Source of the DNA: Amphiscolops sp. MND2022
Lineage: Eukaryota
DNA: 64,000 bases
Assembly: GCA_964187785.1 (NCBI GenBank)
Contig: OZ076411.1
Location: 26,040,001-26,104,000, forward strand
Direction: 5' to 3'
Shown piece after piece: positions 13,306-58,300 of this stretch; the stretch's first letter is position 1; each line of letters opens with the position of its first letter. Both the position numbers and the translations under genes were made by a program. The notes beneath the pieces are model-generated. The model was given only the letters and a program-made list of their open reading frames with translations, had not been told where the DNA came from and did not search any database.

Positions 13306-16300
13306 TTGTTTATACAATCAGGCGTTTCAAAAGTCAAAAATGGAAATAATCTCAAATGGCTCTGCTTCTCGGGACTAACTGAGGACTACCCAATATGGTG
13401 TACCAGATTTCAAGCCTTTGCTCAAATAAGAAGCCTATTCGACACACTCACTGGCGATGATCGACCACCAGCCCAATCCGCGCGGCTTGGGAATGCCGCA
13501 ACTGATGAGACCCGCGCTGCTCACGACGCAGCTCAAGAAGGTCATAGACATGGTGTTGATGACATCGAGAAACGTAAAAACACACTGTGGTCTTACCTTG
13601 CGATGGTTCGCGATTCAACAAGCCTGATGTTGATCAGGCATAATTGTATTGACCGCAAAGACGTCGGTGATGGTCACAAGGCATGGGGGCTTCTACACGA
13701 AAGGTTCCGAAGCAAAGAAACAGTGTTTGCTGTCAGTGTGATGAGGCAACAGGCTCGCTGGATGCTGAAAGAAGACGAGGCACTCCACAATTACTTTATA
13801 AGAGCCCGAGAGCTCTCAAATCGCCTGGAACAAGCCTGGAACATCTATCAGAGCCACTGCTCAATGCGATGGTACTCAATGGCTTACCTGAGCGCTATGA
13901 GCACTTCGTGGTGCAAGAGCTTCAATCCAGCTGATAGTTTCGTGGAGCTTGGAACACTGCTGACCATCTACGAAGAGAGTCGTCTACAACGCGAGTCTGT
14001 GGATGATGTGAATTCACATATGGTGATGACGTCCAAATAGGCCAGGCCAAAGCACAAGTCAAGAATATAGAACGCGGCGCCAAAGTCAAGTTCAGGACAA
14101 CTAACATGCAACTGTTGCGGCATGAAATGTCACATGAAAACTGAGTGTTATAACTTTTTCAAGGTAGCCTTTTTGCTTACAAAAAGTACTTTCAACTTTT
14201 TCTCTTATAAGTTATAAGAAAGAAAAAGTTGAAAGTACTTTTTGTATGCAAAAAGGCTACCTCGAAAAAGCATGTAACAGAAAGGAGCTTAAAGGAGGCA
14301 GTACGGAAGCTTAGCATCAAGTCAGGACAATCAAGCGAGCCAAAAACTAACGACCTAGTAGTAGACTCAGGAAATACAGACCATGTAATAGTGAACAAGA
14401 ACTGGTTCAGAAACTTGAAAAAAGTAGATACTACAGTTACCATTCCTGATGGGGTAACACAAAAGTCCAAGGAATAGTAGAAGTCGAGGTCGTAGCTCAA
14501 GACGTAAAAAGAAGGACTAAGCCTTTTGCCTTACGAAAAGCCTTGTATGTGCCAGGATACCGAACAAACTTGACCTCAGTATCCAATATAGTAGACAATG
14601 GACCTAATATTGGTCATGACGCAAAAAACAGTTTCCTTTGCCTCAAATGCAAAGAGAAATTCTCCATCAAAAGAAATGGATACCTTTTCTTCCTAAGTAC
14701 GACCCCATAGCAAGGAAACCACTGTACTAATTTGAGTGGGGGGTCCAACGAAGCACAACTATGGAACAAACGTTTCGTACATGTAAACTACAGAGACCCA
14801 AAAAGTTCTCTGTCGAAAAACCTGATGGAGGTGGATAAAAAATGCAAAACTTGCTGCTTAGCCAAAATAACCACTACGTCTGTCCCAAAACAAAATGGAA
14901 AAGAAGCATCGAAAACTGGTGAAAGAGTTTTCAGCGATGTTGTTCGACCGATCACCACATCAAGTAAAGATGGGTTTAGATACTTCGTCACGTTCATTGA
15001 CGAGGACAGTTCGCATGCTTGTGTGAAGTTCATGCGTCACAAAAATCAAGTTCTGCAAATGTTCAAAACGTACATCACTGAATGCGGTACGCCAGGCATA
15101 CTTCGCTCTGACATTGGAACCGAGTATTCAAACAAACTTTTACGAACTTGTGTTCCAACAACAAAATCAAACACGAATACATCGTCCCTGAAACCCCGGA
15201 ACAAAATGGTGTCGCAGAGCGATACAATCGAACTATTGTAGAGACTGCTCGAAGTCTTTTAATCTAGTCAAAACTTCCGAAAAGCTAATGGCTCAGAGCT
15301 GTAGAAACTGCAGCCAATGTAAGAAAACTTGTCAAAAAAACAAAGAAGAGAATACCACTTTCGAAACATTTTGGGGCAGAAAACCCAAAACAGATCATTT
15401 GAAAGTTTTTGGTTGTTAAGCATACGTAAACAACCGAATGCGTGAAAAATTGAAATTCAATCCGAAAGCACGGAAACATGTTTTCGTTAGCTACGATGGC
15501 CACAGTACGGCCTACCTGTTGCAAGACATTGGAACTAGAAAAATGACACGAGCTCGCAACGTCGTGTTCAATGAAAAGAGAGTAGTTGGTTTCACCAACG
15601 AAACAAGAGAAAACGAAAATGATCATCTTCTTTTCGATGTAACTTTTGACGATGAAATTGAGCAAAGCAAGACCGAAATTGCAGAAAAAACAGAAGTGAA
15701 GGACGAGGGTCCTGAAGTTGAAGGGAAAGTTGAAAACGCCACTGATGAAGAAAACTCATCGAGTTCCGAATCTGAAATTTATGTTGACACTACTAGCCCG
15801 ATAATTCCTAACTAAGAAGTACAGGATCAGGATGTAACGCCCATCAGGTCAGATTAAGTATTCCAGGCACAACGGTTAAGACTTCCTGTCCTACAGGAAT
15901 GCTTTCAAATAACGAGTGGTGTTCAGAAAACTCCTCAGGTCGTAAAACCAAAAATCAAAGTACCCAGTAAATTGAAACTAACTGGACAACACTTGAAAAT
16001 ATCTATCCCATTGAGCGAAAAAGTGCTAGATGAGAGATGGGACAATTACTATGAAATGAAAGATGCAAAAAGGGCATCTAAGGAGCTAAAGCGAGAGGAG
16101 AGGTCCTCAAAGATATGGCCAAAGTTACAACCATAACTCAACATTCTTTGCGAAAGAAAATGAAACCTACAATCAAGCAATAAGTTCTTGTGAAAAAAAC
16201 GAAATGGCTGCAAGCAATGCAGGATGAGCTTAAGTCTTTGAACAAAACTAACACATGGACGTTAGTTGAGCGTCCAAAGAACAAAAATGTAATCCCGGGG

Positions 16301-17682
16301 AAATGGGCTTACAAAGTCAAAACTAAAGCCGACGGAAGCCTTGAAATTTACAAAGCGCGTAATGTAGGTTTTGAGCAATTTGAAGGCTTAGACTGTTCAG
16401 AAATGTTCGCGCCAACGAGCAAACATTGTCTTTTCGAATCATTCTTCCGCTAGCAGCGAAAGAAATCTTTACGCTAAGGCAAATGGATGTAAAGTCATGT
16501 TACTTACATCCACTAATCAAAGAAGAGATATACCTCGAGCAACAGACTGGCTTTGATGAAACAGACCGCTCGGGAAACAAGCTTGTCTGTAAATTGAACA
16601 AATTATTCTACGGACTGAAGCAGGCCGATAAAAATTGGTATGAGGAGGTAGCGAGCTTCCCCTCATACAACAAAACTTTAGTCGTAGCAAGAATGATTAC
16701 TGTCTTTTTATTGAAAAACAAGAAAAAAGAATGTTGTACGTTGTTCTAAGTTGGGTAGATGATCTAGTAAAAGCAGGTAGCAACAATGAGGATCTAGAAA
16801 AGTTTTAAAAAATTCAAGATGGACGATCGAGGAACACTCGAATGGTTCTTAGGCATGCAAATAAGTCAGGGAAGAGCCAAAATCTCTTGACCAGAAAACG
16901 TATATTGAGAGCGTCATAGAGAAACTTAGCATGCAAGACAGCAATCCTTCGAAAACGCCAGCAGAGAACAATCTGAGATTAGTTATGGCAACTGATAATT
17001 AAACATTGGTTGATGAGAGACTATACAGAAGTCTGGTAGGCTCCATAGTATACATTGCTTAGCAAACTAGAGCAGATATAGTATGGATCGTCAATGTGTT
17101 CTCTCGATTCATGGACAAACCAACTAAAATTAACTGGCTGGCTGGCAAACGTGTCCTCCGCTATCTTCAAAACTGGAAGTCACTCAAGCTGGTCTACTCA
17201 CAAGACAGTGACATCAATCTACATGCAGACAGTGATCCAGACTGGAGTGGCGACCATGATGACAGAAGTTCGACCACTGGCAACTTCTTCAAGCTTGGAT
17301 TAAGTGGGGAAGCAGTAAGCTGGCAAACTAAGAAGCAGCAGACAGTGGCACCATCATCATGTAAGCAGAATATTAAGGTCTAGCTGCTGCAGTGCGAGAA
17401 GCAACTTTCTTGCGTTCACTCTTGTGTGAAATGGGCTATGAGCAATCACAGCCAAGCATCATTGTGGATGACAATCAGATTTGCATCAAGCTGGCAACTA
17501 ACTCCGTGATGCACAAGCGATCGAAATATATTGACACGAAGTTCTACTTCATACGGGAGAAAGTTGATGACAATTCAAATCAACTAGTCTATATTCCAAC
17601 TGATCAACTGGCACCTGATCTGTTGACCAAGGCATTTCTACAAGTGGAAGTGGAGCAACATCGAAAACAACTTTTGGGTTAA
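13306..17682 (+). pseudogene. Frameshifted/stop-riddled Copia gag-pol
   Basis: gag FSGLTEDYPIWCTRFQAF; knuckle CNCCGMKCHMKTEC; protease VVDSGNTDH; integrase VFSDV..LRSDIGTEY; RT WLQAMQDELKSL, QMDVKSCYL, WVDDL; RNase H ADSDPDWSGD..RSSTTG, HKRSKYIDTKFYFIRE. Confidence 0.92.
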
Positions 17683-40238: not shown

Positions 40239-40889
40239 TCAACGTGCTTCTTGACTAAGGGTGATTTCAGAAGGTACTTTATTGAGAAACTTACGCGTGA
40301 AAACAAAGTGATCTCTCTTCAAATATTTAGGAAAGTTACTGTAATGACAACTAGGCGCGGTGTCTCTCAAATCACCAACAGACCTTGAGTCCTTTTTTGT
40401 TATCTTCGATTTCAACCCGGATGAACTTTCCCTATTTTCCTGACTACCAGGAGACATGCTGGCCTCAGTGTCCATGTTCCCTGAAGATGACATTGACCTA
40501 ACAATGTTTTGGATCTCTGGAATGACTCTTTCAGCTATAGCTGTCGTAACAGCTCTATTTATTTGACTATGCATCATGGACATCATTGAATCCATCTCTT
40601 GTGATAGTCTAAGATTGAATTCATTTGAGAAAGTCTCAAAGGACTGCCTGACTTCATTTTGCCTTAGCAAGTCATTTTCATGCAAGTAATTTCTATACTC
40701 GTTTTCTTGGTATGCGTTTGTATCAGCGTCCTCATGGGTCGACGACTGATCTATGGCTTCAGCTAATTCCCTTTCTATGGGGTTATTGTTGATATTTCCC
40801 AACATTACGTCTAAGTTTTCAAAGTCGGACATCATGTCCATTTCTCTAGATTTCCTGGCCTTTGCCTTTTGTCTTCTTGTGGAAGGCAT
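40239..40889 (-). mobile_element. Probable truncated 5' end (gag-like ORF) of a retroelement, fused to a dispersed repeat
   Basis: 216-aa ORF (MPSTRRQKAKARKSREMDMMSDF..). Its last ~35 codons are read from the dispersed repeat starting near 40350, showing truncation. The gag assignment is inference; no catalytic motif is visible. Confidence 0.45.
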
Positions 40890-43115
40890 AAGAAATTGTC
40901 ACAAGGTAAAGATGTTAATTATCTTTTAACTTGCAAATACAACGTAATATTACTGTAATAAGTAACTTTAACATGTAGCTTTTCACAACTTGTGTCCCCG
41001 GGACTAAATATCCCGGCTATATATATTAAAAACTACATGACAGTCAGAATATGAGTTGTCATATTCTAAAAATAGCCTTAAGGGCTTTCTAAAAATAGTA
41101 ACAATTCTAAAAATAGCAACAACTAGCTATTGACATCGTTATGATGTGAGTGACTTTAAAGGAGGTTTCCCGACAGGTAACCTGTTGGCGGGAAGCCCTT
41201 GCGTCTAGAAAGCATATTAACAGCACACATATACATAAGCAAATTACATGCGTCCCATTATCTAGCATGAGATTTATTAACAGCACGCAACATTTCATTA
41301 CCATGCGGTCTTTCGACACTATGTATCCATTTCATGAGAAATTAAAGGCTTTTCTAAGTTCTGAGTAATTGTATTCATCGTTTAGCACCTTTAATTCAAA
41401 AGTGGACTCAGCGTCCAATGGACGCGGCAGTCCTTATTCGTTTGGCGACAGTCGGCATATGGCCGTCAAGTCCTTTAATTAAAGCGCCGCGTACAGTTTG
41501 AATGAGAGCTGGTCAATCTAATACTGCGCTCTGATTGGTCAAAATTCATTTAGACTTGCTGTCCAAGGCGACAGGCGAGGAAACATTTGAACTCGTTTCC
41601 TTTACCTGTACGCCTTGGTGTCCAATTCGCTAGCAACGTACAAATTAACACTAGTATTACGTAATATTAAATCATCACTAAATGATATTTTACATTCAGA
41701 ATAGATAAATTACATGACTTCTAAGGTATAAATGCAGTTTATTTCAAATGTTTCAATTCAAATGGATCGTGTTGGGTAGGGCTTTTTGATAGTTATGGCA
41801 AATAGAATACAAGTTGCCATCACAGGCGGACGCCTGGGACAGTTACCATCATTTGAAAAAATATTTATTAACAAGCCGGGAACGGCTTAATTGGGCGCCC
41901 CTCTTAAGGTACATGATAGCAGAAGTACTTCAAAGCGTCAATAATTCTCTTTCGAATAAATTCTCAATTTCTCAGTACCGAAAAACCAAAAGGACCTTTC
42001 CGAATGGGGACCACTTTTCTCGAATAACCCCCTCCTTACTAAAACGTAATCTATTTGGAATATAACGTCAATATTTGGTTCATATCAGAAAAGACAAATA
42101 ATTTAGTTCAGACCGATAGGCCAGATGGTACATTCCAAGATTTTGTGGAATTTTTGAAGAGCTATTTTGGTCAATTTGTGTGGATTGAAAAAACGTGGGG
42201 AAAGTTACCACTAATGGGGAAACAACTATAACAAGGTATGCTGAAAAGTTTCATTATCTGAAAGTGTTCTTCATATAAAGCTACCATCGAAAACTTTTCA
42301 ATAATGCACAACAAAATAGTCAGAAACAGGAAATTCAGTTTTTTTCCACTTCCTTAATGCTGCCGAAAAAGAATCGAATTTCAATTTTTTTGCAAGCGGT
42401 GACAAAAAAACATCAAAGACGCTGGTTGGGGTTATGAGATATTAGCATACAAACAACCAGCCAGGAAAGACCCAAGTGAGCACCTTTCCTTTGTTTTACA
42501 TAATGACATCAAGTGAAATTTCGGTGATGCGTCAAAGCAAAGCATGCCAAGAGCTTTCGGAATTCAGGTCATTGATGTGAAACAATTCTCAGCGTGGTAA
42601 TCGCAAAATTGAATCTAATTATAACAAAGTTAGAAAACAAGGAGAAAAAAATTCAACTAACAACGCAATAAAAAATTCAATCGGGATTCGATCATTGAGT
42701 CATTTTCTTTCAAGAACCTAATGTACAAGTATAAGGACCGTAGCTTGCTGTTTGAACTACTATAATAACTTCAACTATTCAGATTTTTTACCCGATGGGA
42801 ACGGTCTCCAAGAATTTCAAACATTCAACGTTTGTTTCAATATTTATACGGTTTTTTTCTCACTCAACCCCACATTTTGAATCGAAGCTTCAAAATGAAA
42901 ACCATTGCTTCACGTGGATCCATTTAATAGTCTACATTTTCCCACTTCAAAAATTGTTCAAGAAAATGTTATCAATGAGCGCAAAGTGCCTTGTCTGCAT
43001 GAATCTCATCAGATTTTTAGTTTTGCGATGAGTTATTAATAATTTTTAATTCTCAATCGGTTTTCTATTTACAAGGAACTCATAGAGTTGGCAATAAATC
43101 TATATATACAAAATA

Positions 43116-43121
43116 TTTATT
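43116..43121 (-). terminator. Candidate polyadenylation signal of the dynein gene
   Basis: AATAAA on the minus strand ~105 nt after the dynein stop codon. Confidence 0.55.
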
Positions 43122-43224: not shown

Positions 43225-43328
43225 CTAGTCGTCCAACTGGCAGAGTAAAGCGACTCCTCTGTTGACCCAGTGGGCTTCCGGCATTTTGGAAGGCAGCTGC
43301 ATGTACATGACGAAGTTGGTAGAGTGAC
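43225..43328 (-). CDS. DNAH3: Dynein terminal exon
   Basis: ttttttctcag|GT CAC TCT: (G)[33 protein letters not shown]. Phase 1 matches the donor at 47097. Confidence 0.93.
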
Positions 43329-46300
43329 CTGAGAAAAAATAAACTGTACATTTCAGGGTTTCAGGGTTACATAAAGGGAAATTTCAGAATCTTTATCAAA
43401 TGAAAAAAAAAATGTATTGATAAAGATTCTGAAATTTCTCTGCGGTAATGGGGAAATTAACTTAAGTTATTTAACTTAAGTAAGTTATTTACTAAGTTAT
43501 TTAACTAAGTTATATAAATAACTAAGTTATTTAACTTAAGTAAAAGAATTCTTTTAGTTGTTGTTGTTGAATGTTTGACAAACCGTTATTTTACGTCACA
43601 ATGCTGATAGAATCATGAATTTTTGGGCCTTCATTTCTTTCAACTTTTGTTTCAAACGATTTATACAGAGTTGGACTTAATAAATAACCTAAATTAGTGA
43701 AATCTTTCTCTTTGAGCATTTAATTTAAACTGGATAACTTTTTGAACTCATAGCGAAATCGGCTGCTCTCTCAAGAAAACCAATTTAAAAAACCAATGAA
43801 TTCAAAATGTAATTCATAAATTTAATCTAAAACAATTATTTTTGGTTATATTTTTTCATTATGTAATCGGGCGTGGAAAACGGTTCTTCCTGAGTAGATA
43901 GGTGAGAGTTTTCTTTATCATTATTATCTTTTATATGCCGAGTCAATATATTTCTCGCATGAGTCGATTGTGGCGTCAAGATCGCCGAGCTTCTTTCGAG
44001 CCCACGTTTCGATTTCTTTCACTTGATCGCTTGTCGCGTTGTCGTTGTTACCAGCAGACGACATGTTTCTGCGCCAACACGCTTTCACGCTGTCCAACAT
44101 TTCGAGCACGTCGGATCGTGAAATGTTTGAGCTGACAACTTCAGGTTGACCTTTTTTGTTCTTGGAAGCTCGCTTCTTTTGAATAAAATCTTTCAGCATA
44201 ACCAAATGTGCAACTCGTGGAAAAATATTAAACGGAGGGGGGACTGGATTTATCCCTCCGGCTATGAAAGGAATCAACATTCGAGCTTTGTCGCATTTGT
44301 AGTCAATTTCAACTTGGTCTTCTAAAGTTTCCATGCTTTTAAACATCAAACCAATCAAGATGTTCAGAAATATGAGAACTCCTAGAATGCAGTATGCGAT
44401 CCAGAGAATAAGAGCTACTGTTATTGATACTGTGTATTGTCCAGCATATAGTTGATTGATCAACTGATAGTTCACGCTTCCACTTAGCGCCCAAAAAGTC
44501 ACCCAAAGGGACCCCCAAACATCGGTGAACTGTTTGGCATTTGATTCCCAGATTTCATAGTAGCAGTCATCGAACGCCAGATCAGGCCCAGTACCGTCTG
44601 GCGTCTCAACGGCGCACCTTGTTCCAAACATGACATTTTCCTTCCACATCAAAGAATTCAAAGCAACTGCGAAAGAAAACTGGAAGATGAAAAATATCAT
44701 GAAAAATTTCGCAATGACCCCAATTGCAAAACCAAGAAGGATGTTCAGTTTACCAAGACTCTCGCTGATACCTAGCCAATAAATTGACCTATTAAGAGCC
44801 AGAAGCGTTCCTAGTGAGAACGTTATTTCATAGAATTGAACCATTGCGTCATTCAGACTTGCGTATTTATCATCGGAAGCACCACCAGCAAAGTAGAAGA
44901 TGCTGCTGAAAAGAAATAACGTCATAGTATAAAGATCGTATCGATTCCAGGTATCACTGAAGCACGAAGTTAGACCCAGTTTCACAATCTGCATTATAAA
45001 CTCCACCGCTCTCCCTAACAGCCAGAAGAATATGTAAATATTACAGATCCAGGACAAACCAGAGGATATGGCCCCGTCTTTATACGTTGTGGGGTCCTTC
45101 TCGTCTTCTGGAACCCAACTTGTGAAGTTGACCGAGTTCAGAGTTGTAACTAAAGCGAGCATCAAGAACCCAACAAAAGCGGAAGCGAACTTCAGAAGAG
45201 GAACCTCGAACCACTGGAGAAACGAAACTCCAGGTGGAATGAACACGTTAAGAACCCAATAAAACGGTAGCAACAAGACTCCCAAGATACAGATGTCGAT
45301 TTTAACAAAAATATTTTGTCCTCTCCATGGAACACTGCCGGTAAATGCCTCGTCAATTGCTTGCTGGCAAAACCGGTGTGCTACAAACCGTTTTTGTTGG
45401 GTATTGATTGCGTACATTATACGCGTCACTGGGCCACCTGGGGGGTTAACTTCTCCGTCTACGTTTGGGTTATTCATACTCAGAAGACATTGCAGCTCCT
45501 TATCTGTTGCGCAACACGACAAATATTCCTCGCTAAATTTCTCACAACTCGCAGTCAACTTGTTATACTCTTCAGACAATTCTTCGTCTATAATACTCAA
45601 ACGTGCTGTTTCAGTTCTCATTTTAAATGCTTGATATAAAGGGTCCTTGTGAGTGATCATTATGTAAGACGGACTGCAGATAGCTCGATAAACAGCTAAT
45701 CTGTAAAGAGATCTTTGAAGCCCATCTTGCCCAATATTGGAAGATTCCTCGTCAATTGGAACTGCGCCCAAACTTTTGAGGTACTCTATCAGTTCGTAGT
45801 TGTTGTTATGACATGCCACCATAATTGGGGTTGTCCCAAACTGGAAATGCTTCGACAAAACAGCCAAATTCACAAGCTGGCGGTCATGACTGTATAAATA
45901 CTTGATGCCGTTTTTGAAAGCAACGTCGACTGCAATCAGCATACCATCACCAGGATCCGCACCGTTGCTCATTAGCAGTTTCATCAACTCCTCGTTTTGC
46001 ATTTTGATAGCAATGGCTAAAGGAGTGTATCCGAAGTCATCTTCAGAGTTTATCACCGATTCCAAGTTGTTCGCTTGGCCGATGTGTTCTTGCACAACTG
46101 TGACGTCACCCAATTCGACGCATTTGAAAAACTCGAGTCTGGCATTGGCCAGTTTTTCCGATTCCACATTTTCTTCAGTCCCATCCATGACACTGGTTGT
46201 GTTTACGAATCAGTTTCGCAATTTGGTCAAAAGTGTTTGGCTTAGTTCAATGTGTTCAATGTTTTAAATGGTTTTAGCAAATGAGTTGTGTTCAGAGCAC

Positions 46301-49300
46301 GTTAAAATTTTATGCTTTCAGAAAATGTGCTGTAGTATCGCTTTTTATATCAACCAAGTTTGATGCGTTGGTACTAACACAAGTTTAGCTGAAATTATTT
46401 TGTGTGGTTGAATAATAATTGCTGCTGATATAATAAGTAAATGATGTGTTTTGTACATTGTGGACTAAATTAAATCAGCTAGCCAGTCTCAAACGAAGAT
46501 CTGCAGAAACGTTTTTGAACTCTATCCAAATTCAGTTTCATTCGTTGCTGCGATGCTTGTATGCGTATCCCGATGAGAGAATTATTGAACTGGTCATCAT
46601 GAGTTATTACATAGCTCATAACTTAATGTATGCACCTTTTTTGTGAAAGTAATACGTGAAATAATAACTCTTGTTACATAGATGAATTTATATTTTCTAC
46701 AATCATGACAAAAAGTATATGACTATGGCGGCGTTCTTTCAAGTGTTACAATCGCGTTCACTCGATATTGAATGATTAGTGCATGTTTATTGAAAAATGA
46801 TAACTAATGATAAAATCGGAGATTGATTATTTAAACGTTCTTTCATTGGAAAAATCGAAAAATCTTAAATTCTTTGGAATGTTCTGTTTTTTAAGTACCA
46901 GGCAGAAAGTGTTCTTCATGATTTTATTTCAAATGGAACGCAGAACTTTCTGAATTTTTTGAAGATTCCTCGTTAATCTGAAATTACACTTTAAATTAGA
47001 GAGTTTCCAGAAAGCTCTTTTTCCGAAAAATTAAAGGATATTTGGGTGATTAGCGATGACCGGAAACACGTGATCAGATAAATTAAACCTAGCTCACCTG
47101 TAGTTGAAAGCACACCCCTTCTGGCGGAAGTTTTGTATATGGGACAGGAGTAGACGTCAACGAGGTCGATCTTGGACTTCTCAATAGGTTTTAGCCAGAT
47201 GATGGGCATTGTGTCAAACAGCACTTTAGGGTGAGACTCGTTCAAACTCTGGATCGTTCTGTCCCATCTAGCACCTTCCAAAAACAGTCCCTACAAAAAA
47301 TAATGCATTAGAACTTTGTATCATCACATCACATTTGAAATTTTAGTCTGAAAATCTGTTCAAAAAAGGGCTATTCAGTGTGAGGCCGGTGGTCTGACAA
47401 AAAAAGAAAAAAAGTATTTAGCAAAAAGAAGAAAGTGTCACTGTTATAATCTAGCACTTGTTGGTACAGAAAGCACCAAAACACTTGCAACTGTAACAGT
47501 CAGGCGTTTTGTCTTTCAAAAAAGCGACAAAATTTTCTATATTGTTGAAAGTTTTTCTTTGCTATGTACAAAATTTGGGTGAAAAAGAATAAACAGATGC
47601 CAGAAATGAAGAGAATATTGTTACAAACCGACACATAGGCACCATCTTTACGCTGTTGTTCAGAAGCAATGGATAAAATGGGAATGATTGACGATGAAAC
47701 CTCTGAGGGAATTTTTGAACTAATCTATACATCTCCATTGTAGCCAATAAACTACTGTTTTTGTTAACAAAAACACGATCTCAAACTACTTTAGAGGCAG
47801 AAAATAGACTCCTAATTGAGAAAATTAGACGTCGTTTAATATTGTTAGTAGAACCGTTCGTGAACATTCAAAAATTGATATTTCCGGCTAGAAAGACCTG
47901 ATCAATCTCATAACAAGTGAATAAAAATTGAGTACTACATGTGAAATCTCTACCACACGCACACAAAACAAGTTTTGTTCCAATATTAAGGATCCCTCTT
48001 GAAATGCCAAGTGGGTGCTTTTACGGGTCCTTTTCAGGGGCTGCATTGTAAATTCGTTATGTTTAATTTAATCTATCTGTCTGTAATTTATACCCTCTGA
48101 TAAATTGAATTATTATTATTATTATCTACATTTGAAAAAGTCTTCACCTATTGCAATATTTTACAATGAACATTGCAATGAAGTTTGAATCGTTTTATTG
48201 TGCTTTGATAATGATATATTTTTTCAGTCGAGTATCTCAACCCTGGAAATGGTAAACTATAGTAAACTATAGAAATGGTAAACACGGGGTTCATGAAGGA
48301 GCGAAAATAACATGCAGCATTTAATACTAACTCGCACATACGCTCCATCGCTAGCTTTAGCCGTAACTTCACTTTCAGTTTCCATCGTGGTCACTTCGAA
48401 AACGAAAGCCAAGAAATCGATGGGAATGGTGTACTTCCGAGCAAAGTTTTGACTCACACCCGTCAGGAAAGACTGTGTGAAGTAGAACCCAGACAACCAG
48501 AACACGTCCGGCGCTCCGCTGGCAATCCAGTTTTGGAAAAATTTCAACCTGAAGAAAGAAAACCTCAATTGACACTTTTTTGAATTTTAAAGCATCTGGT
48601 ATGGTCGGCTAGATGTATTTGTACTAGCTGGTCGGTAACTTTTCGTTTTGGTGAAAATTCTATCAACCCAGAGGAGTTCAGATGCAGCATATCATGCTTA
48701 TCTTAATAATGGCCGTAAACATCAAAGACATTATGGAAAAGCTAAAAATAAAAACAACATTAAAATGTGATTTTCATTTCTGAAAACTAGGGACTTAACT
48801 AATTTTGATCGAAAATGACCTCCTAATCAAATTTGGGTATATTCTCAATGTGGTTCCCACAGAACACTGAGACAAGTCAATTTGGTAGCGTTCATTCCAT
48901 AGTGACCTAGAAAAATGAGTCTTGCAACGTACCTGAGCAGTAAATCCGAGACGTATCCCCCTAGCGGTTTCAAAGAGGGGTAACTTTTGGAAGCCCAACT
49001 GCCCGGCACTTTGCCCACTAACATAGAACTGAATACGTCATCCAACTCTGATGACATGACAACGAGACCTTTGATGGCTCTCTGCAGGTTCTGGAGAGTG
49101 GTTCTGATCACGGAGATCAGTCGGTTGAATCTGATCAACTCCTGTCTGAGAACAGTATTCATGGACTCGTGGTAGTCAACAGGGTATTGCTTCATCACCT
49201 GGGAAGAGAAAAACAAAATGTTGCAAAGTTTTGTAAGTCAGATGTTAAAAAATACATAGCATGAGAATTAAGATAAGCTAATGAAAATGATTTTGAAGTC

Positions 49301-52300: not shown

Positions 52301-55300
52301 TTTTTTAGCATACTTCCAATAGACAAATGTCAAAGTTACTTTGAAAAAAAAATCATATAAGACAAAAAGGTAATTTTTTCCATTTCCAAACAACGTTTGT
52401 TCAATTTCTGGAGGTTTTGATGGGTATGAAGAAGAGTTGAAAGTTAAACATTCAACTGCTCAGGCTAACAAGCACGCTTTCAAACAAATTTATGTTTTCT
52501 TCCAAAGCAAATGTGGAAAATGATTAGTTTTTGGGGTCATGGTGTAGTGTTTATATTAGGTGTCTGTTCTGTTGAAATAACTTTTTGAACTCTCTCAAAT
52601 AACTTCTGTTGGGTTTTAAGCAGTTTTTGCCCTAGCTCAGTGGTATTGCCAGGGAAAAAACGCATTTGACGAAAAAAAAACAGGAACCAAAATTTGAAAA
52701 GGGCAACGGCGAGCTGTCAGTCAGACCTTTGTGATGTTGAGCAAAACACTACAAACCACAACTTCAAGCCGGCCATCTTATACTATAGCACTTTGTTCTC
52801 AACTATCAACTGTTTTGTGAAATTGATTTGTTCGTTTTGTACGGTTTTGTGGTTTTGAGTTTGCAGTTTTCAACAAAACCAAAAGCTGTTCAACACACTC
52901 ATGTGCGGCGAGATGATTTCTCAAAAAAGGATAAGATGAGCAGAAAAATCATTTTTGCTGTTTTTCTATTATTTTGCAAGATCGTAATTCACAGCAAGAT
53001 CGGCTAAAAAAGTATACCGTTGCTGAAAATTGGTGAACTGAAAACTTTCCGCTGCTCAACGGGCGTCTTGTAGTTTCTCTTGTAGATTGTTCATATTAAT
53101 ATTGCACCCACTAAGCGGCGTTAATCTTTTCGATCACAAGAGAATCTTTAGAGGTTTTTGCCGAATAGTCGTAACATCAAACTTTTTACAAATTGCCATT
53201 TATTTTTTTTTTTCAAAATAATAAGATGCAGTGAGATTGTTTTCTTGCCTTTATGAAGCAAGACAGAAGCTATAGACAGAAGCTCATAATGCTTTTGGTA
53301 TATAATCCACTCGAAATAATGGCTTACTTCGGCCATGTTGAAGTTGCTTGGGAGTTTACCCAAGATGTCGCTCGCTAATTCTTCAATCTGTTGCTGAGGA
53401 GATTTTCCTTTTCCGCCTGTTTGTCTGGGTAGTGTCAACAGCACACCGTCAAACAACTAAAACCAGTGATAAAACGAACTACTAAAAAACATGTGACTTC
53501 CACGATGCAGAAGCTCGTTCAATTTGATTGGAATTTCTTGGTTTATTAATGCAGTTCTTCAGAATCAAATGAACGGTGTAACGATAATTTAGCTCGAAAG
53601 TAATGGATTCTGCAGAACATTGGTTTCGAGAGTCATTCATTGAAAAGCTCATTTTTAGAATTCTTCGGGCACGCTTCAGCACTTTCTAGTTTTTTCAGCA
53701 TTATTTGAATTTTGTCTGATAAAGCATCATGACGCGAGCAACCTGTTGAGTCTCCTGGTTATCCTTGGTAATGTCAGCATTGTCGTGCAACCCAAACACT
53801 TCTGGGTTGGGGATGATAGGCAATTCGCTGATGTAATCCACAAACGACTGGTGCCCGTTGTCTTCGGGACAGTAGTACACCCCCGACTGGGAGAAAGCAA
53901 GTTTGGGCTCATCCACAATTCTGGCTTCGTAGAAGATGCCCAATAGTGACATGAGGAGACGTCTGTCCTTGTCGTCTGTGACCCGACCTCCGTAGTTACA
54001 CTCTCCGGTCAAATAGGTCAGCGCTTCCCATTGAGGGGTCTCGTAGTCGTTCAAGAACATCTGCAAAAATTTCAACTCGAAATATCATTGTTCACAAAGT
54101 AAAAACAAGGCACACACATTTGCTGAGAACTTGCAAAGTATTGAATTATTATTTCAGAATTCTTTTTTAACAAACGTAGCTTACTGAGGGAGCAAACTCT
54201 TTTTTTTCTGCAAATTGGCGTATCTATCAAGTCATATGAATATGTAATGTTTTGCCTCACGCGGACTGAAATTAATTGACTTCAAATTTGTCAAATCAAC
54301 TTCAAATGTCATTATCAGTTTATTTGTAGTTTTATGAAAAATTTGTTCCATACAAATTGTGCTAAATGTCAGACGTGATTTTATGTGATTTAATTGGGTA
54401 GTGAAAACGAACTTGAAGTTGTCTCATGCTGATTCTGAGATCAGATTCGTTGAACTCGTAAGGAATATTCCACCCGAGGGGCCCAAACTTCCTTCTCTCC
54501 TGGACCACGGCGTGGAAGAAACAGAGTCCAAACAGAATTTTGTGCCAGAACACTGGTTTGTTGCAACCATCGAAAAACTCCGGGTCCGAAATGGGGTCAT
54601 TTTTGTATGACCTATACAAGTTGGCCCTCAAGCCTTTGGGTGGCTCATTTGTCATTTTCACACCTATAATGAAAAACAAATTGATCGATCATGATGTAAT
54701 TTGGTTGGATGGGAAATTCGGCTGTAAAGGGTTACATTAGGATCTCAAAAGTTTTGAGAGGCGTCAATCAAAGAAGTAGTCTTCAAATAATAGAAACCTT
54801 TGTTGTCAATCGCGTCAGGTTTTGATACAAAACATTGGTATTCATTGGAGAGTTTCAGTCAAATACACCTAACATTCATGTACTGAATCAATCCTCTTTG
54901 TTCTTATTTCAAATTTTTAAAAATTGTTCACCATTTTGGAGAATAGACACAGGGAATTGGTCAGTAGGATAACTGGTGAGCCAGAGACGGAAGTCCACGT
55001 GGGTGTTTTCTGGAATAATGACCTCCTCTGTAATTTTCTCCAGAGTCGACATCCAAGATGTTGCCAGATGACAGTTTTGCAGAACCACCCATGTGCCGTC
55101 CTTCAGTGCTTTTTCCAGGTACTTCGTCGCTACAGGACCCTGGTAAATGAACAGAACTGAAAGTTTTTTAGTGCGCTTCCATTTTTCAACAAACAGCTTC
55201 TCTCAAAAAGTATGAATCAATAGAAATTAATAACCAATCAGCCTTCTACTGTTGTACTTGGTTATGATTATAATCATAAGATGCTCATTGAACTGCACAA

Positions 55301-58300
55301 TTAGAAGTCATGATAATTGAATTTGTGATAAAACTTAGTTTTAAAATGTGCAATTTCAGCTCATTTTTTGCAAGATGGGTTGAAATCAAAATTATGCATC
55401 ATTCCATACAAATTGTGCTAAATGTCAGACGTGATTTTATGTGATTTAATTGGGTAGTGAAAACGAACTTGAAGTTGTCTCATGCTGATTCTGAGATCAG
55501 ATTCGTTGAACTCGTAAGGAATATTCCACCCGAGGGGCCCAAACTTCCTTCTCTCCTGGACCACGGCGTGGAAGAAACAGAGTCCAAACAGAATTTTGTG
55601 CCAGAACACTGGTTTGTTGCAACCATCGAAAAACTCCGGGTCCGAAATGGGGTCATTTTTGTATGACCTATACAAGTTGGCCCTCAAGCCTTTGGGTGGC
55701 TCATTTGTCATTTTCACACCTATAATGAAAAACAAATTGATCGATCATGATGTAATTTGGTTGGATGGGAAATTCGGCTGTAAAGGGTTACATTAGGATC
55801 TCAAAAGTTTTGAGAGGCGTCAATCAAAGAAGTAGTCTTCAAATAATAGAAACCTTTGTTGTCAATCGCGTCAGGTTTTGATACAAAACATTGGTATTCA
55901 TTGGAGAGTTTCAGTCAAATACACCTAACATTCATGTACTGAATCAATCCTCTTTGTTCTTATTTCAAATTTTTAAAAATTGTTCACCATTTTGGAGAAT
56001 AGACACAGGGAATTGGTCAGTAGGATAACTGGTGAGCCAGAGACGGAAGTCCACGTGGGTGTTTTCTGGAATAATGACCTCCTCTGTAATTTTCTCCAGA
56101 GTCGACATCCAAGATGTTGCCAGATGACAGTTTTGCAGAACCACCCATGTGCCGTCCTTCAGTGCTTTTTCCAGGTACTTCGTCGCTACAGGACCCTGGT
56201 AAATGAACAGAACTGAAAGTTTTTTAGTGCGCTTCCATTTTTCAACAAACAGCTTCTCTCAAAAAGTATGAATCAATAGAAATTAATAACCAATCAGCCT
56301 TCTACTGTTGTACTTGGTTATGATTATAATCATAAGATGCTCATTGAACTGCACAATTAGAAGTCATGATAATTGAATTTGTGATAAAACTTAGTTTTAA
56401 AATGTGCAATTTCAGCTCATTTTTTGCAAGATGGGTTGAAATCAAAATTATGCATCAATTATGAGTACCTGTCCTTGTCCCAGAGACACCGTCTGGACGG
56501 CTTCTCCTTTGAGTCCTTTGTCTGTGGCGAACTTGAGCAGGGAGTTCATGGGGTCAGCTCCGGGCGACAACACGAAGATTAGAGGTGAGCAGCAGTTGGA
56601 ATCAAGGAAAGTTCCAGCCAGGTCGAAAGTCGGAGGCTCTATGAATTGGCGTCCTTGGTATTCCACAATAAACTCCTGATACAATACACCAGGTTAACAA
56701 TGTATCAACATCTGCCCTCCCCCAGGGTTTTACTGCGTGAGTTTTTCATTGCATAAGAACCTCTTATGCATAGGAACTTCTTATGTACCCAATTGGGTCT
56801 ATCATTGTACCCAATTGAGTCTATCATTTTTAAAGCTATGGCAATCAAAGAATATATTTGGAAAAAGTACGCGAGGATTCCACATTTTCGATGAGGAAAA
56901 AATGAATGACGTCTCATCTAACCTGTACAGCCGGTACAATCTTATCTGGCCTAAGACACCTGAGAACAACCATGCGGTCGAGTCCTCTTAGAGTGTTCCA
57001 CTTTCCAGGGTATGGGCTCTCGTGGGGAGTCACACTGTCGTACACTTCCTTCCAGCTCTTCGAATTCTCCTTCACGTCTACAATGAAATCCGCAACATGT
57101 CTCATTAAACCTTTAAATTTTTTCAAACTGTCTGTACATGCAGAAAGTTCATTGGATAGAAAAGCATTCAGTAATTTTTTTCTCCATTTTGCGTAAAACA
57201 GTGAAAACCCCAAATGTCCATGTCTCACAGCTCTCTAAGGCAAAAATAACATGTCCAACTTTTAATTCACCTTCAATTTTTGCAACTAAAGTTATGTGTT
57301 TGTAAACCCCACTTAAGTATCATCAAATTCATGGAATCAAAAATATGCGTTACATGTTTTCGTCTGATTTGTTCATTGATGTAACGTTTTAAAGATTATT
57401 AAGGATATTTTAAAAATGAAAACAAACCTTCCATGAGGCCGACAAGATTAGGCAAAACAGATGCCCTCACAATTTCACCCCAAGCCTTTTCTGAGAGCCA
57501 CTCTGAAGCCGGATTCGGATGCGGGTTCTCTAGAGCAACTCCTCCAGTGAGCAGGAAGCGCCACACATCGTCGTCCACTTTGTCTCTACAGATGCAATTC
57601 AAGCATTCATTCAGGTTATCCATACAAAAATAAAGAAACTAGGGTCAATTGCTAGTAACATAGCCCGTGGTACCAAATTTACGTCGTTCCAAAAGAACTA
57701 GACTGAATTTAGGAAATAACAAGGAGCACAGTGGCACTGCGATATTTCTCGAAATTCTGCTGAATGCTTTTCAAAAAATTCAGACGCCTTCTGGCCACAA
57801 TTGTTTGACGAAATGAGTCGGAAATTTACACACTAAAATGTCTTCACTGATCTGAAAACTAGTTCATGCACGTACGCAAATAGAGTTCAAAAATGGAAAT
57901 TCAAAAAATGTATGTTTTGCCTTATTCTTGGCAAGATGCAATATAGTTCTAGAATACCATTAATAATTCGGAAAAACCACATTGGCAAAAAAGCCTTTCC
58001 GTGCTAAAACGAAGATTTTTTGCGTATCAAGAAAACGAAAAACATATTTTTTAAATATTTTCAGTCAACACAAATTGAGAACACTTTAATGGTCAAACTG
58101 CTTTAAAAATTATGCTCTGGAAAGGAATCGCTACTTTTTTGCCATCAGCCTCGAATTTACCTTAAAAAGAGACCCCTTAGAACATTAAGGCTTAGTTTTT
58201 CACTCAATAGCTTGAGTTTTTTTAGCATACCCAGAAATATTCTTAGCTTTCCTGTCACTAACCCTCCTTTCAGGATCCCGATGGTGAGAATCAAAGAAAA

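Follow-up and report, generated by a model that had tools for sequence, protein, structure and literature searches.

An Axonemal Dynein Gene of Four Acoel Species Carries a Same-Strand TRPC-Family Channel Gene in Its Last Intron

Does the last intron of an acoel dynein gene hold a second, complete gene, and does that gene depend on its host for expression? An initial annotation of the window (the whole stretch of DNA that was analyzed, 64 kb) had placed a complete TRPC-like gene in the last intron of an axonemal dynein gene and in the orientation of its host, and this placement is supported by the ORF, the exons, and the splice junction. Every detail of that description, namely, the exon ends, the 3769-bp phase-1 intron, the 2265-nt ORF, and both ATTAAA sites, was confirmed (Table 1). 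The penultimate dynein exon ends in ..CAACTACA G at 47098, followed by gtgagc, and the terminal exon, preceded by ..ttttctcag, starts at 43328 and closes with a stop codon at 43225-43227.

Table 1. Features of the Nested Locus, in Positions of the Window
Feature	Position	Strand	Remarks
Penultimate coding exon, DNAH3-like dynein heavy chain	47098-47290	-	GLFLEGARW...VLSTT plus base 1 of a split Gly codon; donor G/gtgagc
Last dynein intron, contains the channel gene	43329-47097	-	3769 bp, phase 1, GT..AG
Candidate 3' splice acceptor (cis or SL trans), ..aataatttcAG	46389-46390	-	Weak lead
Channel 5' flank, probable 5' UTR and/or core promoter	46189-46386	-	Conserved above neutral vs closest relative
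Intronless TRPC-family channel gene	43924-46188	-	754 aa plus stop; omega 0.036
ATTAAA poly(A) hexamer	43821-43826	-	+100 from channel stop
Second ATTAAA hexamer	43719-43724	-	+202 from channel stop
Terminal coding dynein exon, (G)HSTNFV...CQLDD*	43225-43328	-	AATAAA at 43116-43121

By homology, the host is an inner-arm-type (DNAH3-like) axonemal dynein heavy-chain gene. It resembles human DNAH3 and the single-headed inner-arm dyneins in that the best PDB match of the tested exon is human DNAH3 (8j07, 3.3e-38), and the host protein is 4089 aa long in S. roscoffensis and 4107 aa in C. macropyga, as called in public records. It differs from them in carrying a channel gene in its last intron and, also in this window, exonic sequence that is tandemly duplicated over 1056 bp. 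An assembly artefact is ruled out as the origin of the arrangement, since contigs from DNA runs carry the stretch and another contig assembly of this species is collinear with it (99.4% over 13.8 kb, L029). The search of sequencing runs returned four that carry the stretch, all of them DNA and all from one study (two samples), and a single 3072-nt contig covers 43820-46891. Over the stretch, unitig coverage by these four runs is flat, with heterozygous variants but not a single splice joint. When the penultimate dynein exon was used as a protein query for spliced fragments, only dyneins of other organisms at ≤70% identity were returned.

The channel ORF begins with an ATG and runs for 754 codons with zero internal stops. 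Its product is laid out as ankyrin repeats, a TRP_2/linker domain, S1-S6 with a pore helix, a degenerate TRP box, and PPPFNI. Pfam recovers Ank_2 (2.6e-11) and TRP_2 (2.8e-13), both over the curated cut-offs, while Ion_trans fell below threshold and is not reported for this protein. Residues 12-685 form one alignment to TRPgamma, TRPC4, and TRPC5 (E 1.7e-53 to 3e-52), and the alignment to solved TRPC structures takes in the pore FW motif, the LNxLI of S6, the TRP box, and PPPFNI. As read from these alignments, the gene encodes a full-length TRPC-family (TRPC4/5/TRPgamma) channel that is predicted to be functional and cation-conducting. The end-to-end architecture, from ankyrin to PPPFNI, is that of vertebrate TRPC4/TRPC5 and of Drosophila TRPgamma/TRP/TRPL, from which the acoel channel differs in being short (754 aa) and intronless, in its variable turret, and in its TRP-box position, which reads DYKCDK(AR) instead of EWKFAR in 5/5 orthologues; the paralogue L002 retains EWKFAR. 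The S5-pore turret is reduced to a few residues in this clade, and a Cys-rich insert of 110-130 aa is present in S. roscoffensis and C. macropyga. Identity to any other TRPC is only about 28-30%, with no homologue at 30-50% identity among 1.8 billion representatives, and the clade is, in these comparisons, a divergent and acoel-restricted one.

The synteny check that had been proposed in related species bears the nesting out: order, strand, and splice junction of the pair are common to four acoel species, and the pair is conserved in at least three acoel genera. The junction ..ACA G/gt ... ag/Gx CAx TC recurs in the related loci L013, L014, and L017/L028. At the protein level, the penultimate dynein exon is 95% identical in L013 and 72-80% identical in S. 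roscoffensis and C. macropyga; the terminal exon reaches 94-100% identity in the other species, and its HSTNFV..LDD C-terminal peptide is conserved in all four. In 4/4 species, this conserved C-terminal exon occurs once, 3' of the channel gene, so that the dynein must splice across the channel gene. A whole coding unit is thus contained in one intron, with conserved exons of one host on either side, and the public gene records of S. roscoffensis and C. macropyga already contain both genes, nested (the S. roscoffensis channel protein is RefSeq XP_063710593.1). Three metagenome relatives on short scaffolds (L018, L025, and L026) are outside the nesting count; L018 has no dynein exon in the 767 nt before it or the 880 nt after it. 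Because synonymous sites are saturated between lineages, the nesting is old, and sequence comparison indicates that the insertion is ancient and the nesting stable.

The channel ORF is kept intact by strong purifying selection. Against the closest relative (L016, a Logan contig from run SRR19327882, either RNA- or DNA-derived), dN is 0.039 and dS is 1.09, which gives an omega of 0.036; the dN/dS near 1 that would have marked an unconstrained frame is not seen. No paper mentions the accession SRR19327882, and the C. longifissura paper draws on a different project. Channel polymorphisms comprise 14 synonymous and 3 nonsynonymous changes. In comparisons with L013, S. roscoffensis, and C. macropyga, synonymous sites are saturated and the proteins are 72-84% identical, and five lineages with saturated dS retain intact orthologues. 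The channel is intronless and located in an intron, as would be expected if it were a recent retrocopy or a decaying, unexpressed pseudogene left open by chance. That reading is already refuted by the selection data, and it is also opposed by the intact orthologues, the skew of polymorphism toward synonymous changes, and the lack of a parent above 30% identity and of any spliced-leader (SL) or poly(A) hallmark. We regard it as virtually untenable.

An older retroposition is a different matter. The channel had been called retroposed, and an intron-containing parent had been suggested, but neither is supported. No channel paralogue above 32% identity occurs in the genome, every other TRPC is ≤30% identical, and no parent gene was identified. 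We found no poly(A) or A-tract and no flanking direct repeat (target-site duplication) at the channel, and no spliced-leader match within the 64-kb window, so the usual marks of a retrogene are missing from the locus. Relatives at 57-62% identity carry a 55-nt GT..AG intron in the pore turret, and a 29%-identical paralogue at an unrelated locus is likewise intronless. As old age would erase such hallmarks, the channel gene may nevertheless descend from an ancient retroposition whose traces have been lost.

How, then, is the channel expressed? We consider it probable that it is a functional TRPC gene confined to one acoel lineage and an ordinary same-strand nested gene, with its own mRNA and independent of the dynein. 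The channel would be made from a monocistronic mRNA, for which an intronic promoter is the most likely start and the ATTAAA/AATAAA signals ahead of the last dynein acceptor are the most likely end; the dynein pre-mRNA would read past these poly(A) signals, and the whole channel gene would be removed with the intron. The channel flanks are 74-76% identical to those of the closest relative (76% for the 5' flank) versus 52% at four-fold sites. No promoter element was found to be conserved beyond that relative, and noncoding footprinting in more distant species pairs gave nothing significant, as expected given that dS is saturated there. When the intron was scanned against Rfam, the sole match was to mir-1829; it is subthreshold and falls on a species-specific hairpin. 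A channel-dynein fusion is ruled out by an in-frame stop 7 codons 5' of the channel ATG (the open frame is 761 aa versus 754 aa for the ORF), and a read-through transcript, having a 4000-codon ORF upstream, would not translate the channel.

This arrangement is of a known kind: in human, about 37% of nested genes share the strand of their host, and about 41% consist of a single exon (PMC3192792). The statement of the initial annotation that nested genes are usually antisense to their hosts was thus overstated. Neither human nor fly showed a correlation between host and nested expression (PMC3192792). The acoel locus is like the human and Drosophila cases in that a complete single-exon gene sits in one intron of a larger host, on the host strand, and it differs from them in that this organism has SL trans-splicing, which human and fly do not. 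In the literature searched, we found no description of a host-guest pair made of a DNAH3-like dynein and a TRPC. A structural ratchet would best account for the persistence of the nesting: a break anywhere in the intron would cost the animal an essential dynein, and the nesting can therefore persist without functional coupling. So long a conservation could also reflect selection for co-regulation.

One form of coupling would be host-driven and operon-like, with a promoterless channel mRNA cut from the dynein pre-mRNA by SL trans-splicing and poly(A) cleavage. The channel would then be produced where the dynein is expressed, in ciliated or sperm cells. The machinery is at hand: in S. roscoffensis, 30.2% of genes are reported to undergo SL trans-splicing (PMC9911081), and the identical 32-nt leader occurs in 2378 copies in the present genome (≤3 mismatches) versus 0 for the control. 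Because the lineage trans-splices, the route is mechanistically available, as a minority possibility. The same-strand orientation is retained in 4/4 species, and a pyrimidine-rich candidate acceptor (..tttcAG) lies 200 nt 5' of the channel ATG, with the L016 contig starting 3 nt past its AG. However, L016 stays collinear with the genome right up to its first base and lacks a leader, each such processing event would destroy one dynein pre-mRNA, and same-strand nesting is common without coupling. Acoel TRPC genes, moreover, are reported as markers of opsin-co-expressing sensory neurons (PMC8097308, PMC12104807) and not as ciliary-motility genes, which weakens the earlier argument that TRP channels and dyneins both act in cilia and makes a sensory role for this channel likely by analogy. 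Taken together, we judge host-driven expression to be unlikely. Its strictest version, a promoterless "operon inside an intron" in which each transcript becomes either a dynein or a channel mRNA and a sensory channel is tied to a ciliary motor within the same cells, is distinctly unlikely. SL-resolved operons of nematodes, flatworms, and tunicates offer a likeness, in two same-strand coding units, one primary transcript, and an SL organism. They differ in that the second acoel unit is intronic to the first gene and not past its 3' end, and no trans-spliced transcript of the channel was seen.

The initial annotation had also raised a switch, in which use of the channel's poly(A) site ends dynein transcripts early; in the version weighed here, an acceptor in front of the channel could serve as well, and full-length dynein and channel/truncated-dynein output would be mutually exclusive and regulated. 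AATAAA or ATTAAA hexamers do occur between the channel stop and the terminal dynein exon in 4/4 species, and in L013 just some 40 nt separate the AATAAA from the dynein acceptor. On the other side, poly(A) signals in introns are ubiquitous and, as a rule, silent. The shortened dynein would lose 34 C-terminal residues that are 94-100% conserved and would continue into intron sequence until a stop at about 46991, and the channel ORF would be left as an untranslated downstream cistron. We would be surprised if such a switch operated here. An independently expressed channel, spliced out with the last dynein intron, is the reading that we prefer, with the nesting ordinary though old and co-regulation of the two genes only a possibility.

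Acoela are an early-branching and little-studied group of bilaterians, and the locus provides a clean, deeply conserved example of same-strand nesting among them. It also defines a divergent, acoel-restricted TRPC clade whose extracellular pore turret is highly variable. Host-driven, SL-mediated expression, if true, would be an unusual sharing of one transcription unit. As it stands, the locus is no surprise, though it is well suited to testing how intronic poly(A) signals are treated in organisms that trans-splice.

The channel and its dynein host are arranged as tabulated here. The initial annotation had described a complete channel gene nested, on the host strand, in the last intron of an inner-arm dynein, and the ORF, the splice sites, the DNAH3 match and the DNA contigs bear out every part of this; the intron agrees exactly in coordinates, length and phase, and two ATTAAA hexamers (43821, 43719) lie where they had been placed. 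The nested arrangement is real DNA. Four DNA runs (one study, two samples) supply contigs across the channel/intron stretch, a single 3072-nt contig spans 43820-46891, and another contig assembly from this species (L029) is collinear with the window at 99.4%. We note a structural polymorphism, in that one run skips 99 nt of an AT-rich 30-nt repeat array (window 43463-43563); its contigs also diverge at 46498-46501, which may reflect an insertion allele. Downstream of the dynein, at 40339-42395, the window is ∼1.7 kb longer than L029. A hairpin at 43375-43441 (22-bp perfect stem, U-rich 17-nt loop, dG -29.2, z -9.8) stands 47-113 nt upstream of the dynein's last acceptor; the genome contains one copy of it, the other species compared show no conservation of it, and its sole match in Rfam is to mir-1829, below threshold (30.9 bits vs a cut-off of 60).

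Features of the nested locus (window positions unless a locus is named)
Feature	Position	Strand and placement	Basis
Channel ORF, 754 codons, ATG to stop	43924-46188	minus	ORF reading of window
Dynein penultimate exon, GLFLEGARW...VLSTT	ends 47098, on first base of split codon; then gtgagc	minus, upstream of channel	
Dynein terminal exon, (G) plus 33 protein letters not shown	starts 43328 after ..ttttctcag; stop 43225-43227	minus, downstream of channel	
Dynein last intron, 3769 bp, phase 1	43329-47097	minus	
Turret insert, S. roscoffensis / C. macropyga loci	L014:11590-11999; L017 and L028:11590-11939		

The channel protein carries ankyrin repeats and the TRPC-specific TRP_2 domain (Pfam), and its residues 12-685 align in one piece with the solved structures of Drosophila TRPgamma and vertebrate TRPC4 and TRPC5 (E 1.7e-53 to 3e-52), an alignment that takes in the pore-helix FW, S6 LNxLI, the TRP helix and the PPPFNI motif. 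Unlike these channels, it has DYKCDK as its TRP box in place of EWKFAR. Among 1.8 billion representative proteins, just a handful exceed 50% identity and the next best reach ∼30%, which on sequence comparison indicates a divergent TRPC clade restricted to the acoel lineage of the window; the best named relatives are Convolutriloba macropyga and Symsagittifera roscoffensis, which place the window in an acoel. With their orthologues just 71-72% identical, and with no second close copy in the window's genome, neither of these is the window species. We compared codons across the orthologues of the window, its closest relative (contig L016, 93% aa), another acoel species (L013, 84%), S. roscoffensis and C. 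macropyga. The window and L016 give an omega of 0.036 (dN 0.039, dS 1.09), clearly not the dN/dS near 1 that had been named as speaking against the initial reading. With the three others, synonymous sites have reached saturation (pS about 0.8) and the proteins keep 72-84% identity, and 14 of the 17 polymorphisms within the ORF in the DNA runs are synonymous. The S5-pore turret is a hotspot in this clade: the window clade has a few residues there, S. roscoffensis and C. macropyga have a 110-130 aa insert rich in Cys and NxS/T that is open and shows partial conservation, and two metagenome relatives have a small GT..AG intron at the same point.

For the host, the tested exon (window 48848-49216) has human DNAH3 as its best match (3.3e-38), followed by other single-headed inner-arm heavy chains, with outer-arm chains scoring far lower. 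Gene calls in public records give a product of 4089 aa in S. roscoffensis and 4107 aa in C. macropyga with the full dynein Pfam domain set, and these records of two sister species already show the nesting, with the channel gene lying on the same strand within the dynein's range. A 1056-bp tandem duplication within the dynein gene (window 54346-56457), through which L029 is collinear, contains identical ORF pairs (54362-54679 = 55418-55735; 54924-55160 = 55980-56216).

The synteny check proposed in the initial annotation recovered both the nesting and the splice junction in four acoel species. Penultimate exon, channel ORF and terminal exon follow in this order on one strand in the window species, the L013 species, S. 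roscoffensis (three assemblies) and C. macropyga (two assemblies), with the donor (..ACA G/gt) and acceptor (ag/Gx CAx TC) at an identical codon position in all four. The terminal exon is single copy at each locus, always downstream of the channel (protein 94-100% identical), so that dynein splicing has to bridge the channel gene. Saturation of synonymous sites between the four lineages indicates that the insertion is old. Elsewhere in the window, retrotransposon-like ORFs (13306-17679, plus strand) match ORFs lying downstream of the C. macropyga locus at 33-62% aa similarity, and calls of rve and RVT_2 domains exist there; their orientation relative to the dynein is opposite, which marks them as a repeat rather than synteny.

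The channel had also been taken for a retroposed gene, a proposal that gained no ground. The window's genome yielded no parent-like copy (best paralogues just 28-32% identical), no A-tract or flanking direct repeat was found around the channel, and the window held no spliced-leader (SL) remnant. In two relatives from one metagenome (L018, L025; 57-62% identity), the turret is interrupted by a small canonical intron, 55 nt and phase 0 in L018 (GTAAGC..TTGCAG, L018:2370-2424) and with a GTACGT donor at the same place (about 1590) in L025. A paralogue on the same chromosome (L002, G000:C3:59816752-59821671 in the window species' genome) is a complete single-exon TRPC of 1231 aa, 29% identical to the channel, with Ank, TRP_2 and Ion_trans domains and the canonical EWKFAR. 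Given the intron in relatives and the intronless paralogue, intron poverty seems to be a trait of acoel TRPCs rather than the mark of a recent retro-insertion. Retroposition as the channel's origin has no direct support; an ancient retroposition is possible.

A dynein-channel fusion is excluded by a stop in frame, 7 codons upstream of the channel ATG, and an unspliced dynein transcript would read into the intron as far as a stop at about 46991, leaving the channel on such a transcript as an untranslatable downstream cistron. The channel's flanks (156 nt upstream, 73 nt downstream) are 74-76% identical to those of the closest relative, whereas four-fold degenerate sites are 52% identical, and the flanks are therefore constrained, as expected of UTRs or a core promoter. 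In every species compared, the stretch from the channel stop to the dynein's last acceptor contains poly(A) hexamers. These features suggest that the channel is made from its own monocistronic mRNA, most probably started at an intronic promoter. We think it improbable that a promoter-less channel is instead released from dynein pre-mRNA by SL trans-splicing, a route that the leader's presence in the genome would allow: the 32-nt leader trans-spliced onto 30.2% of S. roscoffensis genes (PMC9911081) occurs as the same exact leader 2378 times in the window species' genome (<=3 mismatches) vs 0 for a reversed control. A candidate acceptor (..tttcAG) is found 200 nt upstream of the channel ATG and L016 begins 3 nt past ..tttcAG, but no leader is present on L016, which may derive from DNA. 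Genome-wide, unrelated sequences follow the leader copies at different loci (L019-L024), which fits retro-copied, trans-spliced RNAs.

The possible dynein/channel coupling or poly(A) switch suggested initially is not favoured. Across 109 nested pairs in human and 752 in fly, expression showed no correlation with that of the hosts (PMC3192792), and long conservation alone need not mean coupling, since the dynein would be disrupted by any rearrangement within the intron. For TRPC, the proposed connection to dyneins by way of cilia is weak: a cluster of sensory neurons that co-expresses opsins is marked by TRPC genes in the acoel Isodiametra pulchra (PMC8097308), and in Xenacoelomorpha TRPC is counted within the rhabdomeric-type phototransduction set (PMC12104807). 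That nested genes are usually antisense holds in human (∼63%), where ∼37% nonetheless lie on the host strand and ∼41% are single-exon (PMC3192792); same-strand intronless nesting is thus a common minority pattern, and the dynein/TRPC pair is a well-conserved further example of known gene nesting.
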